Origin: Thecamonas trahens ATCC 50062
Lineage: Eukaryota; Protista; Apusomonadida
NCBI RefSeq assembly: GCF_000142905.1
Contig: NW_013657645.1
Location: 1-64,000 of the forward strand
Reading direction: 5' to 3'
Length of the DNA stretch: 64,000 nucleotides
The notes beneath the pieces were generated by a model. That model made no database searches. It saw only the letters and a program-made list of their open reading frames with translations, and was not told where the DNA came from. Positions 25,925 to 45,059 of this stretch are shown here, one piece after another; positions within the stretch are counted from its first letter, which is position 1, and each line of letters starts with the position of its first letter. A program made the position numbers and the translations under genes.

Positions 25925-27957
25925 ATGCCTGGTACGATGACTGGTATGGTGGTTGCTGTCGTGGCACTCGCCTCGCTTCTCCTCGCACCGCACCTTGCCC
26001 TCGGTGGCTCGGTCCCGCCGTGGGCAACGTACACCTTTGATGGCAAAACCAACCGAGGTGACGGAGTCGGTGCGGCTGGGACCAACCTCGCGCGGTACCT
26101 TGGTTACCATTATCCGGACGGCTCGTCTTCTATGGAGTTTGCGTCGCGGCCAAAGTGCTGTGACCTCGAGGCGTTTTTCCGTGTCGAAGTCGACCAGCCG
26201 TCGCTGGAAGGCCTCAATGTGGCCACCATGTCCTTTGGCCAATTCTCGCTCTCGCACGATGTGGCCCTCACGCCCGACTCGACCGACCTTCATCCCAACC
26301 CCGAGTCATGCACCTCGCTCCATCGCATGAAGTATGTGCCGGGCTCGTCGCCGCGGGAGCATGTCAACGTCGTCACCTCGTTCATCGACTTGTCCCAGGT
26401 CTACGGCTCAGACGATGCCAAGGCCCTGGCGCTCCGCACTCTCTCGGGCGGCAAGCTCAAGACCGGGCCGGGCAACCTCCCGCCGCGCGGGTGCAAGACC
26501 CTTGGCGTCAACATGGGCAACCCCATCCATGGCGTGTCCAACGAGCAGCTCTTTTGCGTCGGCGACACCCGCGGGAACGAGAACATCATGCTCCTCGCCT
26601 TCCACGCCATCTTTGTCCGCGAGCACAACCGCCTCGCGGATGAGCTTGCTGCCGCACACCCGCGGTGGTCCGACGACGAGCTCTTTTCAAGGCCCGCGCC
26701 ATCAACATTGCCCAGTACCAGCAGATCACCTTCTACGAGTACTCGCGCGCCATCCTCGGCGACGCCGTCTTTGACCGCCTCATCGGCCCGTACTCTGGCT
26801 ACGACCCGGCCATCCGCCCCGAGGTCTCGGCCGAGTTCTCGCAGGGCTCGTTCCGCTTTACCCACGGCCAGATCCCCGAAGTTGTCGTCGACATGACCAC
26901 CCCGTCGAGCCCGTACCTCCGCTCGCTCTCCGAGTTCTTCTTCAACCCCAAGGAGCTCGCCGGCCGCGGCGTCGACGCCTTTATGCACGGCATGTTGCTC
27001 TACCCGTCGCAGGAGGTCGACGCCCAGTACGCCAAGACCCTCATTGACTTTCCGCACCTCCTCGCTCTCGACTGCATGCGCGTCCGCGACCTCGGCCTCG
27101 CCTCGTTTGAGCACGCCCGCGCCCACTACGGCATCGCCTCGCCGGTCACTGACGTCCCGCGCAAGCTCGCGCTCCTCGACGTCTACGCCTCGTCGTCCGA
27201 GGGCACCGACCTCTTCACCGGCGGTCTCGCCGAGGAGCACGAGGTCGGCTCGTCGTTTGGCCCGGTCTTCAATGCCATCTATGCCCAGCAGTTGCTTGCC
27301 CTCCGTGACGGCGACCCGTACTGGTTCGAGAACCCGTCGTACGCCCTCCTCTCTGCCGCCGAGCGCACCGCCGCCCGCGCCACAACCCTCGCCCACATCA
27401 TCCGCCGCAACACCGACATCCCGGCAGACCTCGTCCCCGACAATGCCTTCAAGATGCCGTTCTACTCGGCAAACACTGCGTCGTCGGGTGGCGTCGCTAC
27501 GTCCACCTCGTCGGCTTCGGGCTCGACGTCGTCACCCGCCTCCCAGTCGACCGCAGACGGCCACGTCTACCCCACCGCGCCTGCCGCCTCCAACAACGCC
27601 GAGCTCAGGTACCTCCGCGCCCTCACAGGCATCACCGTCGTCGGCTTCCTCGTCGTCCTCGCCTCGGCCGCTGTCCTCGCCGCCACCGCCTACCGCCTCG
27701 TCAACCGGCCCACCGCCGCCCCGGTCGCCTCGACCAAGCGCTCCTCCGGCCTCGCCCGCTCGGTCAAGCCGCCGCGCAAGGATGCGAACCGCTTTGACGG
27801 CGGCGCCTCACTCATCCACCTCGGCTATACCGTCTCGCCCGAGCACTCGGCCTCTTACGAGGGTGACGTCTGGATGTCGCACGTCTCGTCCGACGACCTC
27901 TCGTCCTCGCCGCGCGCTCCTGCTGCCGCTGCCGCCGCTGCCAAGCCGCGCGCGTGA
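25925..27957 (+). CDS. Animal-type heme peroxidase (peroxidase-cyclooxygenase superfamily) with signal peptide and C-terminal TM helix; frame break near 26685
   Basis: FGQFSLSHD (distal His), TSFIDLSQVYGS, GDTRGNE, FVREHNRLA, FRFTH (proximal His), RVRDLGL, LRDGDPYWFEN. TM segment LTGITVVGFLVVLASAAVLAATAY. Confidence 0.88.
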
Positions 27958-35963: not shown

Positions 35964-36839
35964 TCATGACGAGTCTGACTCTTGCCAGTGAGCATGAGCC
36001 CGACGCAGAGCCTCGCGGCGACCGTCGCCAAGCTCGCGATAGTAGGCACGGGTGGCGCGGCGCTTGTCGAGGCACACCAGCTCGATGGCAGTGTCAAAGT
36101 CGTGAAGCGCAGCGGTGTTTTGGTTGAGGGCGAGCTCGGTAAAGGCCCTGTTTTTGTAGATGATAAAGTCGGCCGGATTGATCTGGATGGCGTCGGTAAA
36201 GGCGTCGTACGCGTCGCCGTACGCGCCGCGCTCCATCCGCACCACGCCGAGCTCGTTCAGCAGGACAGCATTTGGCTCGGGCTCGGCCTTGATGGCACGA
36301 ACGAGGTGCTTCTCGGCCGCGTGCATGTCGCCGGCAATCCGCGCCTTGTTCAGCCGCTGGATGTGCTTGACCGATTCGCGCGACTTGACCACCACCTTGC
36401 CGCTCTCCTCCAGCTCCTTCTCCCTTCTAGTCGGCCGCCTTAGCCTGCGAGCATGATGCGGTGATACCCCGCGGCTCGATTCCGAGCTTGAGTTGGTCCG
36501 GCTCTTTCTCCGCGGCAGGCGGTACGAGCTCGAGTCTGACGATAGCGATGACGAGCGTGGCGACGACGATCGTGAGCTCAAAGAAGACGATCTTGATGAC
36601 TTGCGCGACTTCTTACGTGACCTGCCCACCACTTTGCGTGACCTGTGTGTCTTGCCTGCAGCCTTGCGCGACTTGCCCGCCGCATTACCCGACTTGCGCG
36701 ACTTGCCCGCCGACTTGCCTGCAGCCTTGCGCGACTTGCCTGCAGCCTTGCCCGACTTGCCCGCCTTGCCCGACTTGACCGCCTTGCCCGCCTTGCCCGC
36801 CGCCTTGCGCGACTTGTTCGTCTTCCGCCCAAACACCAT
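35964..36839 (-). CDS. TPR-repeat protein with a K/A/G-rich repetitive basic N-terminus and an R/S-rich linker
   Basis: TPR helices NELGVVRMERGAYGDAYDAFTDAIQINP and YKNRAFTELALNQNTAALHDFDTAI. GKSRKAA repeats. Confidence 0.75.
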   Translation of the reverse strand: MVFGRKTNKSRKAAGKAGKAVKSGKAGKSGKAAGKSRKAAGKSAGKSRKSGNAAGKSRKAAGKTHRSRKVVGRSRKKSRKSSRSSSLSSRSSSPRSSSLSSDSSSYRLPRRKSRTNSSSESSRGVSPHHARRLRRPTRREKELEESGKVVVKSRESVKHIQRLNKARIAGDMHAAEKHLVRAIKAEPEPNAVLLNELGVVRMERGAYGDAYDAFTDAIQINPADFIIYKNRAFTELALNQNTAALHDFDTAIELVCLDKRRATRAYYRELGDGRREALRRAHAHWQESDSS

Positions 36840-37117
36840 GCCGTCGACCCTCTTTGCCCCAACACACAGCCACACAATCTCTTCCGAGACGTGTGTCTCT
36901 TCTGCATCAGTCTGTCTCGGCCTGCCAGGCTCTCTCGGCCTGCCACCGGCCAACCGCTCACCCTGGACCGGTCCTATCTCAATCCCGGTGAACCGTACTA
37001 TCAGCGGGGAAAATTGTAAACCGCTAACCATCAAAGGCGGCGCAAGGGAAGGGAGAGGAGGAGGTGGGGGGGGGGGGGGGAGGAGGAATTTGCTCGGGTC
37101 TACCACTTGTCGCACAC

Positions 37118-40100
37118 ATGGCCGAGTTGGAGCCTCACCATGTGCACCTCGCACGGTTTGTGGGTGCACGAGTTGGGTTCATCATGAACTCCAAGCGCAT
37201 CTATGTGGTGACGGATAATGCGTATGTGAGGGGTGGAGGAGGGGGGTAGGGGGGTAGAGGGGAGTGTGCTTGTGAGGGTGGGGTGGAGCACGAGGTGGGA
37301 CGCCATGGCTTGCCCCCCATGCCTCGCCCTCCTCCTCCTCTCCTCGCACGTGCGACTCACTGTGGAGAGTCATCATGCGGAACGGGCTGGTCGATCAACG
37401 GTGATTGGCTTTACGGGGAATGGCCGCTGTCACATCGTCACTGTCGTGTCTGTTGTCTTGTCTGCTGTTGCTGTTGTGTCTGTTGTTGCTGTTGTGTCTG
37501 TTGTTGCTGTTGTGTCTGTTGTCGCCATCGTGTCTGTTGTCGCCATCGTGTCTGTTGTCGCCATCGTGTCCGACACCGCTGTCTCCCCTGTCGTCGCCAT
37601 CTCGTGTGTGGTCGCCATCGTGGGTGTGGTCCCCATCGTGGGTGTGGTCACCACCTCGTATATGGTCGCCATCTTGTGTGTGGTCCCCATCTCGCGTGTG
37701 GTCCCCATCGTGGGTGTGGTCACCACCTCGTGTGTGTGATCGCCATCGTGCCTGTCATCGTATTTACCGCCTCTGTCGTATCCGTGTGGTCACCACCTCG
37801 TATATGGTCGCCATCTCGTGTGTGGTCCCCATCTCGCGTGTGGTCCCCATCGTGGGTGTGGTCACCACCTCGTGTGTGTGATCGCCATCGTGCCTGTCAT
37901 CGTATTTACCGCCTCTGTCGTATCCCTCATCATATCTATCCGCCGTGTCTATCCTGATCATGGTCGTGATCACTGACTGGTTTCAGCTTTCTCGGTCTCG
38001 ACGCCACAACTCGCACGTCCAAAGAGGTCTTCCCCTACGACGCCATCGCGTCGGTCAAGCCAGCCGAGAACGACATTCGCATGGTCAATTTCTCAGTCCG
38101 TTCGGGAAAGAAAGGCAAGGCAAAGTCAGAGTCATTGGTTGTTGAGCCTGCCTGTCGCGCCCCGCTCCTCTCGGCGCTCCATCTTGCTATGACCGCTGCT
38201 CTCAACGCTGCGCCCATTGCCGCCTTTGCCGCCTATCGCCCGGCCGATCCCCCGATCGCCTCACGTGTCGAGATCTACCCGGCCACGCTGTCCGTCGACG
38301 AGGCCTCGTTCCTCCTCCATGACCTGACCCACGTTATGGTCGTCGATCCCGCGCCCGCCGATGCACAGCAGGTCATCCTAGCCTGGCGCGACGGTTCGCA
38401 CTCCCGCCTCTTCTTCAACTCGGTCGACTCGCCCGTCCGCGACGCCTTTGTCTCCTCGCTCATCTCCACCATTGCCTCGCTTCTCGGACGAGCCCTCCCC
38501 GCTCCTTCTGTTCTCGACGTCGCCGCCGCCGACGAGCTCGTCTCCGAGCGCGCCCTCCGTGGCCTTGTCGCCCCAGCCATCTTCTCGGCCTCGGCCCGCC
38601 TCCTCCCGCCGCCGCCGCCGCTCGACCCTGCTCCCGGTGATCACATCCTTGCCGTCCTCGACACCGACACTACCACGTCCTGCACCCTCCGCTTTTCGTC
38701 GGACACGCTGTACATCCTCGACGCCGACGGCATCGCCACCCTGCTCGGCTACCCGCTGGCCGAGCTGGAGATCATTATCCTCCATCTCGTTGGCAACGCT
38801 GAACTCCTTGCCCTCACTTTTGCCGGCCTCGATCCGCTCTACATCCACACCGCATCCGCACGCTCTGTCGCCGGCAACGCCGTCCCGCTCGCTCTTGCCG
38901 CAGGCGCCCGCCTCGCTCTCCATCTCGAGGTCTTCCCGCCCGCGCTTGTCCTTGATCCGGGCACTCCCGACCACACCGCCGAGCTCGAGCCGCTCGTCCT
39001 CGCCCAGCTCTCGCTTGCACTCGAGAGCCGCAACACATCGGCCGTCGCCCTCGCCGCCCGCGAGTACCTCGCCAACGTCCGCGCCGCCCGCGCCGTTGCC
39101 AAGGAAGCCAAGCGCATCCTCCCGCGCATTGCTTCTCTCCTTCTTGACGCCCTCCGGGTCTCCGCCACCAACGCCTCCCGCTCTCCCGCACAGGCTGCCG
39201 AACCCGATCTCTTTGATCCGGCCACACGCCTTGCCCTTGCCCAGGTGGTGGTCCATGGCCTCGCCGCCCCGGCCGTCTTTACAGACGCTACTGATGCCTC
39301 GTACCCGTACGTCGCCCTCGCCTGGGACGCCCTCGTCTCTGCCGATCTCTACATGGTCTTTGCCGGTGCCTCGCTCCTCTACGCCCTCACCCACCAGGCT
39401 TTCCCACACAAATCGCCCAAGTACGAGCGCGCCAACCGCGCAGCCGTCTTTGCGCACCCGGCGCGGCTACCACCTTTGTCTCGGTCCTCGCCAACCTCGT
39501 CTCGCCCGACATGCCACCGGCTCCACTCGTAGACGCCATCCTCGCTCTCCTCGCCTCGATCCTCGCCTCGCTCCTCGCCTCGCCGCGCGCTGTTGCCACC
39601 CCGGATCCTGTCGCCTCTGCCCTCGTTGCCGCTCTCTACCAGCGCACCGGTGCCCTCCTCCAGCTCGCCCGGGTCGATGCTGTCGGCGTTCAGCGCCACG
39701 CTGTCAACATCCTCCGCGCCGTCCTCGAGTCGCTCCCGCCCGAGACCTTCCGCGCCGTCCAAGACAAGGCCCGCAACGCTGCCCAGCTGCTGTTCTTTGT
39801 TTCCCTGGCCGCCGGCAGTCCGGATCCTCCGCTTCGTATCGGCGCCATCCTCCTCGTCACCCTCCTCGTCGAGGGCAACCCGTCGTCGGTCGAGCTCATG
39901 GAGCGCGTCTTCCCCAAGCCGCTCGTCCTCCGCATGCTGCAGCTCTCCGAGAACCCGACAGCCCTCACCCGGCCGCTCGCTCACACGCGCTGTGTTCCGC
40001 TCTGGCGCAAGCCGGCGGCATATCCGCCCGATCCCTCGCCCATGCCCGTCCCGCCGGCCTGCCAGACCCGTCTCTGGTCGCTGCTCTTCGACATGCTCTC

Positions 40101-43100
40101 GGTCGACTTTTTCGAGCCGACCTTTATCTGGGACGCACGCACCCGTGCCGAGCTCAACGACAAGCTCATCTCCGAGCTCGACACCTTTACCCGCTGGCGC
40201 GCCTGGCGCGCTTCGGCCCTCGAGCTCAGTCAAGCTCATGACGCCTCGGCTGCTACCGCGCCGCTCCACGACGACAGCCCGGTTGCTGGAACTTCCCATC
40301 CGCGCCCGGCCGGCCACGCCCGCGCCATCCCGCCGCTTCGCTGGAACCACGAAGAGTTTGAGGTTGTCTACGACTCGCTCGCCGGCGAGCTCCGCGTCGG
40401 CCAGTTCTACCTTGACGCCATCCTTGCCCGCGTCCCCGAGGTCAAGCTCGCCCAGCCGGGCGTCTTTGTCGAGGAGATGGCCCACCATCTCACCTTTTGC
40501 ACCGACGTCGCCATCCGCTGCCGCATCTTGCAGGCTCTCAAGTGGGCCTACGGTGAGTACATGCCGGTCCTCGGCGCCTACCGCTACATGGAGCCGGTCG
40601 TCATGCACCTCCGCGCCCTCGACCAGCCGCTCGTCCGCGAGTGCCTCCTCTCGTTCCTCGCGCAGGCCTTTGTCCTCCGCGACAACATCAAGAGCTTTGT
40701 CGCCGCCGGGGGCCTCGACCCGCTCATGGCCCATCTTGCCACTGTCCACTCGGGCGATCCAGCTGCGCTCACCGTCGGCATCTCGATCCTTGAGCTTCTC
40801 ATTCTGGCCGCCTCGCTGGTCCCGTCGCTCGATGCCCACGGCCGCCTCCTTGTCCCGCCGCCTCGGGTCCGCACCGCCCTCGCTGCCCCCAACTACCTCG
40901 CGGCTATTGCCCAGTGTCTCCTCGTTGGCGACTCGGAGCTCAGCTCGCGCGCCATCCTCCTCATCGACCTCCTTGTCCGCGACTCTGAGTCGCTCCTCTA
41001 CGACGTCGGCTCCATCGGCATCGAGCCCATGCTCCTCCTCCATCCGCTTCACATGGGCCAGCCCGGCGCCAACCTCCTCGCCCGCCTTGTTGCCGCCGGC
41101 GTCGACGCCACCGTCCGCCGCCTTCTACCGGATGGTATGGTCGCCCTCCTCTGCGCCGCGCCGTCGACGCCCATGGCCATCCGCTCCGGTGACACCCCGT
41201 TTTATGATGCCCTCGTCGGCGACGTCGACGCCCCGCGCGTCATGTGGGGGCCCGCCGAGCGGGAACTGCTCACCGCAGCCTGCGCCGAGCACCTCGCCCC
41301 GCTCGTCACCGCCCTCGGCCAGGACCCGCTCGCCAAGTACCTCGACGTCGTCCCGTCCACCGTCCCGGACCAGGTCACCTACCCGCGCCTCGATGCCGAG
41401 CTCGTCGTCCGTGGCGTCTTTGTCCGCAACATGGCCGACGCCGCCCGCTTCCCGGTCACCGAGGTCGACAACGAGAACGCCTTTGTTTCCGAGGCCCTCG
41501 CGTGTCTCCGGACCTCCTCCGAGCACCAGTCTCAGACCGCGCTCGTCCGCTGCATCGTCGGCGTTGTCGCCGCGCATCCGCACCTTGCCGTCCTCAGCGC
41601 CTTCCCCGCCTTTGACATTGTTGTCTCCCTCCTGCATGACGCCGCCGCCGCCGCCACCGTCTCCGACCTCCTTGATGGCGTCCTCGACCTCATCCACCGC
41701 GTTCTCGCCGCTGACTCGGAGTCCAACGCCAAGGGCTTTGTCCAGGCCCAGGGCCTGCCTGCGCTCGAGGCCGTCCTTGTCATGCTTGGCGAGCTGCCGG
41801 TCGACACCCAGGTCGCCACCTCGCTCCAGCTCGCCCTCCGCCTCGTCGCAGTTCTCGGCTCGCGCAGCGCGACAAGGACGCGCCTCTTGCTGGTACCGGG
41901 CACCGTCGCCGCCTGTGTCCGCGCTGTCGAGCGGTGGGAGGCCATGCCGCACGCCGCAAGCGTCGCCCTCGCCGCCATCGCCGCCCTCACCGCCGAGGAC
42001 GCCCACTGTGTCCTTCTCGTGGAGCACAAGGCGCTCTTTGCCGCCCTCGCCTGCATGGCCGAGGGCGGTGTCGTCGCACTCGACGCCGCTGGCGTCCTCC
42101 CGGCACTTGTCAACCGCAGCGACAACGGCGCCGTCGATCTCGCCCGCCTGGTCGACATGCACGTTGTCCGTGCCGCCGTCCGGGACGGCGCTTGCGGTCA
42201 CGACGTCCTCGACGCCTTTACTGCCGACGCCCAGACCCCGCATCGTGTGTGGAACAGCGCCATGCGCGCCGAGGTCGCCGCCGTCTGCCGCCGCCTCCTG
42301 GCCTCGCCGCTTCCCGCCGCCGACGTCCTCGACGGTTGGGAGTCGGAAGTCCTTGCCGCCGAGCCGGTTGTTGCCGGCCTTTTTGTCGCCTACATTGTGG
42401 GCGCCGAAGACGAGGTGCTTGACTGCGATGACGCTGATCTGGCGACAGTTGTCACCGGCCTCTGCGCGGCCGACGCACTTACTGTGGTGACCTGCAAGGC
42501 GCTGCACGCCCTGCTCGGCGCCGGCGGTGAGAGGGTTGCAGCCGTAGTCGATCCGCTCGCGCTCGTTGACGCTGTATCCTCCGCCGATGACGAGCATCTT
42601 GCGAGTGAGGCTGCGCGCGTTGTCGCGCGGCTTGTCTCACTCGACGCCGGCCTCGCTGCTGTCCGCACCGGCTGCGGCGAGGTTGTTACCCGCGGCCTCC
42701 TCGCGCGGGTTCTCGACGAGACGCTGCGGATGGTGCCGACTGTTCTAGTCATTGCCTGGACCGCTATCGGCACCGAGCCTGGAATGCTTGCCGATCTGCT
42801 CGCATGTGGCTCTGTCCTCTTCCCGCTTGCGGTGGTGGTCGAGTGCGGCCGCCGCGAGACCGACAGGGTGGTCGCCGCGTCGATGCTGGCCAACCTGGTG
42901 AGGAGCCCAGATCATGGCGAAGCCGCTCGGGCCATCCTCGCTCAGTATCTCATCCCGCTCCATGTCCAGACACTTGTCACCACGCCGCACCGCCTGCCGG
43001 CCATGCTCGATGCCGAGCTTGTCCAGCCGAATGCGGTGTGGAGCCGTGGCATGGCCGCCGCCCTGGCTCGGGCGGTCCGGGTCGAGGCCGAGGAACTAGA

Positions 43101-44535
43101 CGTCGGCTCCGGCCGCTGGCAGCCGGCCGGAGCGCAGCTGGCGAGTCACCCGGACGTTGCCGGCTATACCCTCGTCAGCGGCATCTACGTTGAGCTCTTT
43201 GTCGACGCGCCAATCTTTGCCATCGCTGACGTTAGCGGCTTTGTGAGCGGGTGCATGGCCGCCATGTCCGAGTCTCCAGACAAGGTGCGCGTCCTTCTAG
43301 CTGCGGTAGAGAAAGCGGTCCGCCAGAGCCGGCCGCGGGTCGAGGCCGAGTCGCTCGCTGCCTTTGTGGCGGCCTGTGTGCCCGGAGTGGACACGCCCGA
43401 CGAGCTTGACGACGCCGCCTCGGGCAGCGCCCTGCGCATCCTGGCAGCACTGTTGGCGGCCGATCTCAACGGCGTCGTTACCTCGGGCCTCGACGTCAAC
43501 CGGCTCGCTGCACTTGGCAAGCGCCATCCGGCGATGGAGATCGCGGCGCTGGAGCTTGTCCAGCAGTGCGTCCAGCTCAGCGACGTGTTTGTGGACCAGG
43601 CGCTCGACGGCGGGCTCATCGGCCTCCTGCTCAACATCCTCGCGTCACCGTCGTCGAGCAGCGAGCTCGACCTGGCGGCAGCAGCCGTCCTCCGTGCATG
43701 CGTTGCTGATCCGCGCCGCGGCAGCGAAGTCGCCGCCGAGCTCGAACAGTCGCGCAATGTTGGCATCTGGGCGCCGTACGCTGGTTCAGCCCCGGCAGAC
43801 GCACCCTCGTCGGGTGGGGATGTGGGCGGGGTATCGGCCGTTCCGTCGCTTGCCGCGTCGTCATGGGCATCGTCGCTCGACGATGTTGGTGTTGATGGCT
43901 ACGCCGACGCTAGCGACTACCGTGACTCGTCGATGTCGGAGATCGACGTCGACCGGCTCGTTGCCGCGCTTGCCGGCGTCGCAGTTGAGCCATCGGCCGG
44001 CATGGTCGAGGAGGCACTAGGCGTTCTCGACGAGTGGGACGACGACGACGATGACGACGAGAGCATTGTCGAAAGAAGGGAGGTCAGCACCCAGCTCGGA
44101 CGCCCTGTCGAAAGCGACGATGAGTCTATAGAGAGCGAGAGTGAGGTCGCCACGCCAGCGCCTGCGGTCGCTGACGCAGCTCCCGAAGCTCCGGTCGTGG
44201 CTCCGGCGGACGACGGCAGCGATGATGGCAGTGAGGGCAGCAGCAACGATGTTGCAGATTTGCTTGAGGTCGTTAGCGACGGCAGCAGCGACGATGACCA
44301 CGCACCACCGCAGGCAGCGTCCGGGGATCTGCTAGCCCAGATCCGGATGGGAACCCAGCTCCGCGCGGTTGATACCGAAGCGGTGCGGCAGGCCAGTGCC
44401 GCCGCACGCGCTGAGTCCTCGCTCTCGGGTGCCATCCTCGCCTCAATGGAAGGTCGGCGCAAGGTGATGACACTCACCTCGGAGGATCTTCGCGACGGAT
44501 GGAGCGGAGACGAGGGCTCTGACGACTGGGCGTGA
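37118..44535 (+). CDS. RME-8/DNAJC13-like protein with no visible J-domain and a C-terminal WH2-C-A (VCA) module; exon 1 37118-37221, intron 37222-37986, frame break near 39458
   Basis: The spliced N-terminus SKRIYVVTDNA|FLGLDATTRTSKEVFPYD...VNFSVRSGKKGKAKSESL resembles the RME-8 N-terminal domain. Four IWN-like repeats (IWDARTRAEL, VMWGPAERELL, VWNSAMRAEV, VWSRGMAAAL), plus YDSLAGELRVGQFYL and PPPRVRTAL. Confidence 0.8.
37440..37925. repeat. Intronic 18-bp minisatellite with a higher-order 142-bp duplication
   Basis: Units gttgtgtctgttgttgct, then atcgtgtctgttgtcgcc, then atcgtgggtgtggtcccc. The block caccacctcgtatatgg recurs at 37649 and 37791. Confidence 0.9.
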
Positions 44536-45059
44536 ACACCCCCCTCCCTGGCCGGCCGATGATGTCGTACCGCACCCTTAAAACAGTCGAGTTGAGTGGC
44601 CAGCGTGTGATCTTGGGTAGGTGTGTGATCGGGGAAAGCAGGTGTTAGGCCACAAGTGGGCGATCTTTTGCAGCGAGCAGGTGATCGACAGATCATTAGC
44701 GGCTGACCAGGGAGCAGGCAGGTGTTCCGGACCATGCGACTGGCCGGACCGCGGGGGGCAACCAAGCGATCGAGCAACCATCAGATCAGACAACCGAACG
44801 ACACACGTATGATCGAACAGCCATGAGGCAACCGGATGGCAAGCGGGTGATCAACCAGCACGGGTGAAACCGAGCGGAACGGGGTCTAACGCGACATGCG
44901 GGAGCAAGCGCGGCAAAAGTGCGCCTATCAGCGATGAGCGGTCTCTCGCCAGTCGACGGCCGACGAGCCGACGGTCGGCACACCTGACGCGACACGAGTC
45001 AGGCGTTTCGGGGAGCAAGGTCGAGGGAGGGGAGTCAGACAAGTCAAGTCAAGGAATCC

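Follow-up and report, generated by a model that had tools for sequence, protein, structure and literature searches.

Can one polypeptide join an RME-8-type scaffold to the actin-nucleating tail of the WASP family? The question is raised by a locus at positions 37118-44535 of a 64,000-nucleotide stretch of Thecamonas trahens ATCC 50062 (NCBI RefSeq assembly GCF_000142905.1, contig NW_013657645.1, positions 1 to 64,000 of the forward strand), referred to here as the window. An initial annotation of this DNA had described an RME-8-like scaffold lacking a J-domain (J-less) and ending in a module made up of a WH2 motif (V), an amphipathic central helix (C) and an acidic tail (A), and had put it forward as a candidate Arp2/3 nucleation-promoting factor. 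WASP-family activators are classed by the module that sets where and when a shared VCA fires, and only a few classes are known. Each of these opened a field, WASH that of endosomes and WHAMM and JMY those of endoplasmic reticulum-Golgi traffic and autophagy. The presence of an RME-8-like scaffold together with a VCA at 37118-44535 is confirmed, and the interpretation placed on it is partly supported. The gene probably encodes a J-less protein of the RME-8/DNAJC13 superfamily, of ~2217 amino acids, in which a VCA replaces the regulatory C terminus and which would serve as a single-polypeptide, membrane-targeted class I nucleation-promoting factor. The broader proposition, that this is an old and unnamed WASP-family class in which a J-less RME-8-type scaffold with a VCA nucleates branched actin on endomembrane sorting domains independently of WASH, we regard as evenly balanced between true and false.

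The locus is a single gene on the + strand (37118-44535, ~2217 amino acids) that consists of a short first exon, an intron and one long exon, with its start codon ATG at 37118 and its stop codon TGA at 44533-44535. GC content across the region is ~0.61-0.69 in 2-kb windows and the layout is eukaryotic. The reading frame shifts by one base near 39456, which leaves an open reading frame (ORF) of 1674 amino acids whose ATG, internal to the gene, is at 39511. Searches used three separate pieces in place of the joined protein: exon 1, the stretch of exon 2 in frame A, and the 1674-amino acid ORF. The gene is laid out as follows.

37118..37221, + strand: exon 1, 104 nt (34 codons and 2 nt), MAELEPHH...VTDN, in which the first PH-like fold starts
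37222..37986, + strand: intron, 765 nt, with a GTATGT donor at 37222 and a TTTCAG end at 37986
37987..44535, + strand: exon 2, a single long coding exon running to the TGA, with a 1-nt frameshift in this assembly
39455..39460, + strand: frameshift site in a C-run (39457-39459), with one C fewer than an estuary-metagenome contig

The proposal turns on the last 70 amino acids, which form the V-C-A module, and on the linker that precedes them. In the following list P0001 is the nearest relative of the window protein, considered further below.

43783..44319, + strand: disordered acidic and Ser-rich linker, sharing only DVDRLV and poly-Asp blocks with P0001
44029..44058, + strand: DEWDDDDDDD (DEW and seven Asp) in the linker, a second acidic/Trp motif
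44323..44376, + strand: V, the WH2 motif as matched by Pfam (DLLAQIRMGTQLRAVD at 44326-44373), also identified by PDB matches and the actin model
44419..44469, + strand: C, the amphipathic central helix SLSGAILASMEGRRKVM, aligned to N-WASP C and to the genome's WASP and SCAR, with an Arg-Arg pair
44482..44535, + strand, including the stop: A, an acidic tail with two Trp (W1664, W1673) that ends ...GSDDWA-stop

The WH2-like segment, central helix and acidic Trp tail of the initial annotation all hold up at this position, as does the second DEWDDDDDDD within the disordered acidic linker. The window WH2 contains an LLxxIxxGxxLRxV motif, and comparison of the tail (the last 81 residues) with all PDB sequences returned N-WASP VCA constructs only (E 1e-3), in an alignment that spans the WH2, the C helix and the terminal DDW. 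A profile of five family tails finds N-WASP at E 1.3e-13, 2.7e-12 and 3e-10, through V, C and A, the match at 2.7e-12 spanning N-WASP residues 423-500 from one end to the other; weaker matches are to Spire, WAVE1, WAVE2, WIP, Cordon-bleu, MIM and the WASL CA peptide. Within the C helix, AILASMEGRRKVM aligns with N-WASP C and with WASP and SCAR of this genome, and its Arg-Arg pair is invariant in the five family tails. The Trp at the C-terminal acidic end is invariant across the family. The tail also aligns column by column with the products of the WASP, SCAR-like, PH+polyPro+VCA and SH3+WH2 genes of the same genome, all of which have in common with it the unusual two-Trp acidic end. By these comparisons the tail is conserved and statistically WASP-like, with a similarity that is more than chance.

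The VCA regions of WASP/N-WASP, WAVE and WASH have the same order of WH2, amphipathic C helix with a conserved Arg and acidic tail with a terminal Trp. The difference lies in what precedes it, as the N-terminal part of the window protein is without WH1, CRIB, SHD, WAHD and WMD and has in their place an RME-8-like scaffold of ~2000 amino acids. Relative to WASP and N-WASP, it also lacks a proline-rich region (present in one of the clades described below) and adds a second Trp in the A region and, within the linker, a further DEW-polyAsp block. WHAMM and JMY, together with the proposed WAWH and WAML (PMC3298513), likewise combine a lineage-restricted N-terminal module with the shared VCA, and some of them act at membranes, although their N-terminal domains are unrelated to that of the window protein.

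Contact of the tail with actin was modeled, in three runs, using the 81-residue tail and the product of L025, an actin-family gene that has no intron in this genome (conventional actin by sequence). The ipSAE score of the complex is 0.80, compared with 0.01 for the best control; of 78 solved complexes 51 reach the mark applied to this score, as do 2 of 108 mismatched pairs. Agreement between the three runs is at least 73% of contacts, with a partner pLDDT of 50 or more. Residues 11-32 of the modeled tail occupy the barbed-end cleft of actin, formed by actin residues 23-29, 143-148, 167-168 and 341-355. The modeled contact is the canonical WH2 site, and this shows a predicted likeness to WH2-actin complexes, which is not the same as binding. 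From the model we infer that the tail would bind actin.

Upstream of the linker, the order of elements is collinear with that of RME-8/DNAJC13: a PH-like N terminus, RME-8_N and four IWN repeats.

37987..39454, + strand: N-terminal PH-like region, homologous to the RME-8 N terminus (P0001 match; hhalign)
39559..40425, + strand: RME-8_N Pfam matches, PF19432 profile positions 526-815
40126..40158, + strand: IWN repeat 1 (FIWDARTRAEL), ORF residue 206
41242..41274, + strand: IWN repeat 2 (VMWGPAEREL), ORF residue 578
41521..41565, + strand: site of the J-domain in canonical RME-8, where the alignment has a gap
42247..42279, + strand: IWN repeat 3 (RVWNSAMRAEV), ORF residue 913
43036..43068, + strand: IWN repeat 4 (AVWSRGMAAAL), ORF residue 1176
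43147..43155, + strand: lone HPD tripeptide in the fourth-repeat region, incidental and not a J-domain

The RME-8-like N terminus and four IWN repeats noted by the initial annotation are both present in the sequence. Over 489 amino acids the frame-A part matches P0001 residues 1-460 with 36% identity (E 2e-66), and hhalign of a two-sequence N-terminal profile against canonical RME-8 N termini gives a probability of 94.8% (E 5e-8, 443 columns). On the long ORF, Pfam RME-8_N (PF19432) scores 54.8 bits against a cut-off of 25.4, and the Trp of each of the four IWN repeats is invariant in the alignment examined. ESM Atlas feature searches returned only generic armadillo/RME-8_N neighbors.

The J-domain, which the initial annotation had failed to see between repeats 2 and 3, is indeed missing. 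Pfam DnaJ has no match at E<=1 on any piece of the gene, and the ...YHPDKNP... that 18 canonical RME-8 proteins carry between IWN2 and IWN3 is aligned with a clean gap in the window protein and in its relatives; the sole HPD, as had been remarked, lies in the region of the fourth repeat. The canonical C terminus, HDLF...YLT, is likewise absent from the window protein, with the linker and VCA in its stead. Endosomal localization of human DNAJC13 is opposed both by the HPD of its J-domain and by its YLT motif (PMC12404652). Set against RME-8, DNAJC13 and plant GRV2, the window protein therefore shares the PH-like N terminus, RME-8_N, the four IWN repeats and the helical solenoid, in collinear order, but differs at both of these sites.

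It differs, too, in the motif that contacts phosphatidylinositol 3-phosphate (PI3P). K17, W20 and Y24 of human DNAJC13, in the first PH-like fold, are required for PI3P binding (PMC12404652). The canonical TKHSWRGKYKR motif reads GARVGFIMNSKR in exon 1 of the window gene and TKEKFFKNSKR in the second clade of relatives (clade b), such that in both the positions of K17, W20 and Y24 are R/K, F and S. Basic and aromatic character is kept and the Tyr is lost. Membrane targeting by such an N terminus is plausible from its sequence.

From these features a mechanism can be sketched. The PH-like N terminus and the IWN/armadillo-like solenoid would place the protein on an endomembrane, the likeliest being an endosomal sorting domain, as for RME-8. 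With no J-domain, Hsc70 could not be recruited. The flexible acidic linker would present the tail, the WH2 of which is predicted by sequence and model to bind an actin monomer, while the C helix and Trp-containing acidic end, judged by their motif conservation, would engage Arp2/3 and give rise to branched filaments at the membrane. Arp2/3 prefers two VCA inputs, an arrangement that oligomerization of RME-8 would suit. RME-8 has been reported to oligomerize (Norris et al. 2022, as cited in PMC12404652).

The protein would be expected to act beside the WASH complex, not to replace it. By analogy, the expected site of action is the same, namely endosomal sorting domains with Arp2/3-dependent actin, but in the window protein scaffold and VCA are on one polypeptide that has no WAHD. 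The genome encodes WASH (WAHD at 155.8 bits) and strumpellin (1351.6 bits) separately; the WAHD is on another contig and has no match in the window gene. In animals the link of RME-8 to FAM21/WASH is an indirect one, according to work cited in PMC12404652. A search of the genome for WASH subunits and a canonical RME-8, as the initial annotation had suggested, was thus successful for WASH and strumpellin and not for RME-8: a plant GRV2 query and the Pfam model found no canonical RME-8 in the 28.7-Mb genome, in which the window gene is the sole RME-8-family locus found.

The same fusion was sought, and found, in other eukaryotes, and the window gene is not a one-off. On present sequences it belongs to a conserved family that is present in several protist lineages, uncultured protists among them. 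The nearest relative, P0001/P0030 (from an ENA assembly), is 36% identical and has the same V, C and A at its end; in the V+C core it and the window protein are identical at 23 of 34 positions, compared with ~37-40% identity for the long ORF overall. Members of clade b are ~20% identical and have a polyPro region and a VCA. HMMER, run exhaustively against 1.84 billion representatives, gave only 27 matches, among them P0014, which combines RME-8_N and polyPro with WH2, C, an invariant LAANPF and a Trp-containing acidic end. Used in turn as a query, P0014 retrieved P0035-P0040 and the longer cluster members P0050 and P0052, of the same architecture and with no HPD. The proteins with RME-8_N and a VCA tail and without a J-domain are accordingly P0001/P0030, P0014, P0035-P0040, P0050 and P0052. 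A metagenome scan with a two-sequence alignment found nothing, and no NCBI or UniRef record was found for any member of the fusion family.

P0039 is on 12 contigs, of which at least four, from four different sequencing runs, are of ~6.65 kb and contain only this ORF and short flanks. A JGI contig is likewise ORF-sized. Such contigs have the form of full-length transcripts, which indicates that the fused form is expressed in clade b with body and tail on one mRNA. In the clade-b tails (L023:8158-8442, L033:6141-6425 and L034:6343-6627) the invariant LAANPF follows the C helix and precedes the acidic end; the window protein is without it. NPF motifs are of the type bound by the EH domains of endocytic proteins.

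Other J-less RME-8-like proteins have no VCA, among them proteins of Gefionella okellyi and Platysulcus tardus (EukProt), P0006 and P0015. Maximum-likelihood trees separate all 11 of the J-less sequences, the window protein included, from the 18 canonical RME-8 proteins, which come from plants, algae and amoebae among other groups. The separating branch has SH-aLRT support of 98-100%, and long branches are flagged by the program. The window protein, clade b and Platysulcus have the signature F-x-x-[NS]-S-K-R in place of W-R-G-K-Y-K-R, and this, together with the common J-domain gap, argues for a real J-less clade. The VCA may have been gained once or twice, and the well-supported branches allow a single origin.

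A different history has to be weighed here. The window protein could be a fast-evolving RME-8 ortholog, the J-less clade a long-branch artifact, and the VCA an independent and recent gain by exon shuffling from the VCA genes of the genome. The genome offers no canonical RME-8 that might be the ortholog instead, the J-less branches are long and flagged by the tree tool for long-branch joins, the window VCA core is equally near to clade b and to the genome's WASP and SCAR (12-15 of 34 positions each), and the linkers differ, being acidic in the window protein and polyPro in clade b. Such an account must, on the other hand, accommodate the F-x-x-[NS]-S-K-R common to the window protein, clade b and Platysulcus, a J-domain gap at the same place in all, and the 98-100% support for the split, and we consider it improbable. 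It alters the history of the protein, not its predicted function. The term paralog, used in the initial annotation, fares in a similarly mixed way, since there is no canonical RME-8 beside the window gene in this genome, and yet across the family the J-less proteins form a separate subfamily in the trees. Paralogy within one clade-b genome was sought and not demonstrated, as the canonical matches P0041 and P0042 come from other sequencing runs.

Several observations weigh against the reading of the protein as a membrane-targeted activator of Arp2/3. Support for it is computational, and the activity of the tail is predicted. The window WH2 scores 17.1-17.9 bits in Pfam, under the cut-off of 23.1, and so of the profile matches anticipated by the initial annotation RME-8_N was found, DnaJ was absent as foreseen, and WH2 fell short; the WH2 of another VCA-tailed gene in the same genome is likewise under the cut-off (18.9 bits), and those of clade-b members are above it (24.8-25.7 bits). 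The score of the actin model may echo the model's memory of solved WH2-actin structures. Two of the three PI3P-binding residues are replaced (W20 by F and Y24 by S; motif from PMC12404652), which makes the target membrane uncertain. The genome search gave no candidate for ARPC2 (Pfam P34-Arc), which is not read as absence, because ARPC3 and ARPC4 are present (189 and 206 bits), a first-look filter was applied and several loci contain stretches of N. There is no proline-rich region in the window linker, nor poly-Pro in P0001, and most WASP-family members have one; its position upstream of the VCA is usual in the family and not strictly defining. RNA support is weak, as 151-nt metatranscriptome contigs (X14) match the gene body only, at 100%, with none on the tail; they are not counted as proof of expression, and DNA carry-over may account for them. 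Finally, sequencing runs that resemble the assembly's own source, X2 among them, carry the frameshifted form of the window at ~3x depth, and given these reads a strain-specific pseudogene keeps a small probability.

Some of these points would be met by a tail that combines a WH2 for monomer binding with an acidic regulatory segment and does not activate Arp2/3. It might then supply actin for networks nucleated by WASH, or have a regulatory role, intramolecular or through a bound partner, like that of the DNAJC13 C terminus. The modeled contact covers WH2 and actin only, regulation is the role of the disordered DNAJC13 C terminus (PMC12404652), the genome already encodes WASH, the complex that serves endosomal actin, and, as noted, the window protein has no proline-rich region. 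We nevertheless think it unlikely that the tail is limited to such a role: the C helix, with its hydrophobic face and Arg-Arg pair, and the acidic-Trp end are conserved in both clades, C and A align with those of N-WASP and with the solved WASL CA peptide, and the two-Trp acidic pattern is as in the genome's WASP and SCAR. Activation of Arp2/3, which we infer from these motifs, remains the preferred function, with an endosomal location suggested by homology and qualified by the altered PI3P residues.

The frameshift bears on whether the gene is intact. When public sequencing runs were compared with the window over 39300-44600, an estuary-metagenome contig covering 39300-40083 (two mismatches over 784 bases) was found to have an extra C behind 39456 that joins both frames. 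P0001, the 36%-identical homolog, is collinear with the window protein across the site, and the codons of the long ORF that differ between the metagenome contigs and the window comprise 14 synonymous and 7 non-synonymous changes. On the strength of this contig, the collinearity of P0001 and the synonymous excess, the frameshift is read as an assembly or strain error in a gene that is otherwise intact and encodes ~2217 amino acids. The correction of frame that the initial annotation had called for was thus needed, and its cause would be one missing base in the C-run at 39457-39459 rather than a second intron. The latter was rejected, as the sole nearby GT...AG pair encloses 87 nt, in frame, and the contig shows a one-base indel.

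Were the frameshift real, the locus could be a decaying pseudogene or an assembly chimera, with an RME-8 remnant to which a VCA had become attached by chance. The frameshifted form is present both in the window and in the source-like run X2, and a public protein set contains the truncated 1674-amino acid ORF letter for letter. But the independent metagenome contig has an open frame, a single disruption is present across 6.6 kb of coding sequence, the codon changes are mostly synonymous, and independent assemblies and transcripts contain the same fusion. Moreover, DNA contigs of three runs (X1, X2 and X6) span body, linker and tail, such that the continuity to 44535 for which the initial annotation had sought RNA evidence is seen in DNA, with RNA contigs confined to the body. 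We regard decay or chimerism as very improbable. The truncated ORF in the public set does indicate that the public gene model at this locus is probably split by the frameshift, and ordinary surveys of domain architecture may miss the fusion as a consequence of the split gene call.

No paper describing RME-8 or DNAJC13 together with WH2 or VCA in one protein was found in the searchable literature, in keeping with the initial impression that the architecture is outside the described WASP-family classes. The broad survey of the WASP family that proposed WAWH and WAML makes no mention of RME-8 or DnaJ (Kollmar et al. 2012, PMC3298513). The fusion looks like an undescribed class of actin-nucleation activator, a new class within a known, WASP-family kind of system. 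If this is true, an RME-8-scaffold class would provide a single-polypeptide, genetically tractable route to the coupling of actin and endosomal sorting, and would support a direct functional link of RME-8-type proteins with Arp2/3. As a natural 'Rosetta stone', the fusion would then indicate that the indirect RME-8-to-Arp2/3 link of animals is ancient, and the RME-8 superfamily would have a non-chaperone branch.

The wider genome is rich in the components of actin assembly, with many actin-family genes and actin-related proteins. The best-scoring actin gene (C39:7106-8299, L024) has a short in-frame Pro/His-rich insert after residue ~33 that is like an unspliced small intron. VCA-tailed genes are unusually many, comprising WASP (WH1+PBD+2xWH2+CA), SCAR-like, PH+polyPro+VCA, SH3+WH2+CA-like and WASH.

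C32:~27200-27400 (L011), C4:~232400-232600 (L009), C21:~253300 (L014), C64:~134250 (L013) and C24:175120-175935 (L019): loci of the VCA-tail set

Two Trp in the acidic end (W-x5-8-W) are found in the genome VCA tails that were read (a set that excludes the WASH tail), in the window tail and in P0001.

At the other end of the window gene, the intron at 37222-37986 consists almost wholly of repeats, namely an 18-nt minisatellite of ~15 copies and a 142-nt unit present twice with 99% identity. In the P0001 contig, stop codons lie just upstream of the equivalent residue, which suggests that it too has an intron there. Upstream of the start codon, by ~35-80 nt, a purine-rich tract at 37040-37085 contains a G-run of ~16 bases and sits in the short gap to a divergent upstream ORF (35964-37169, minus strand).

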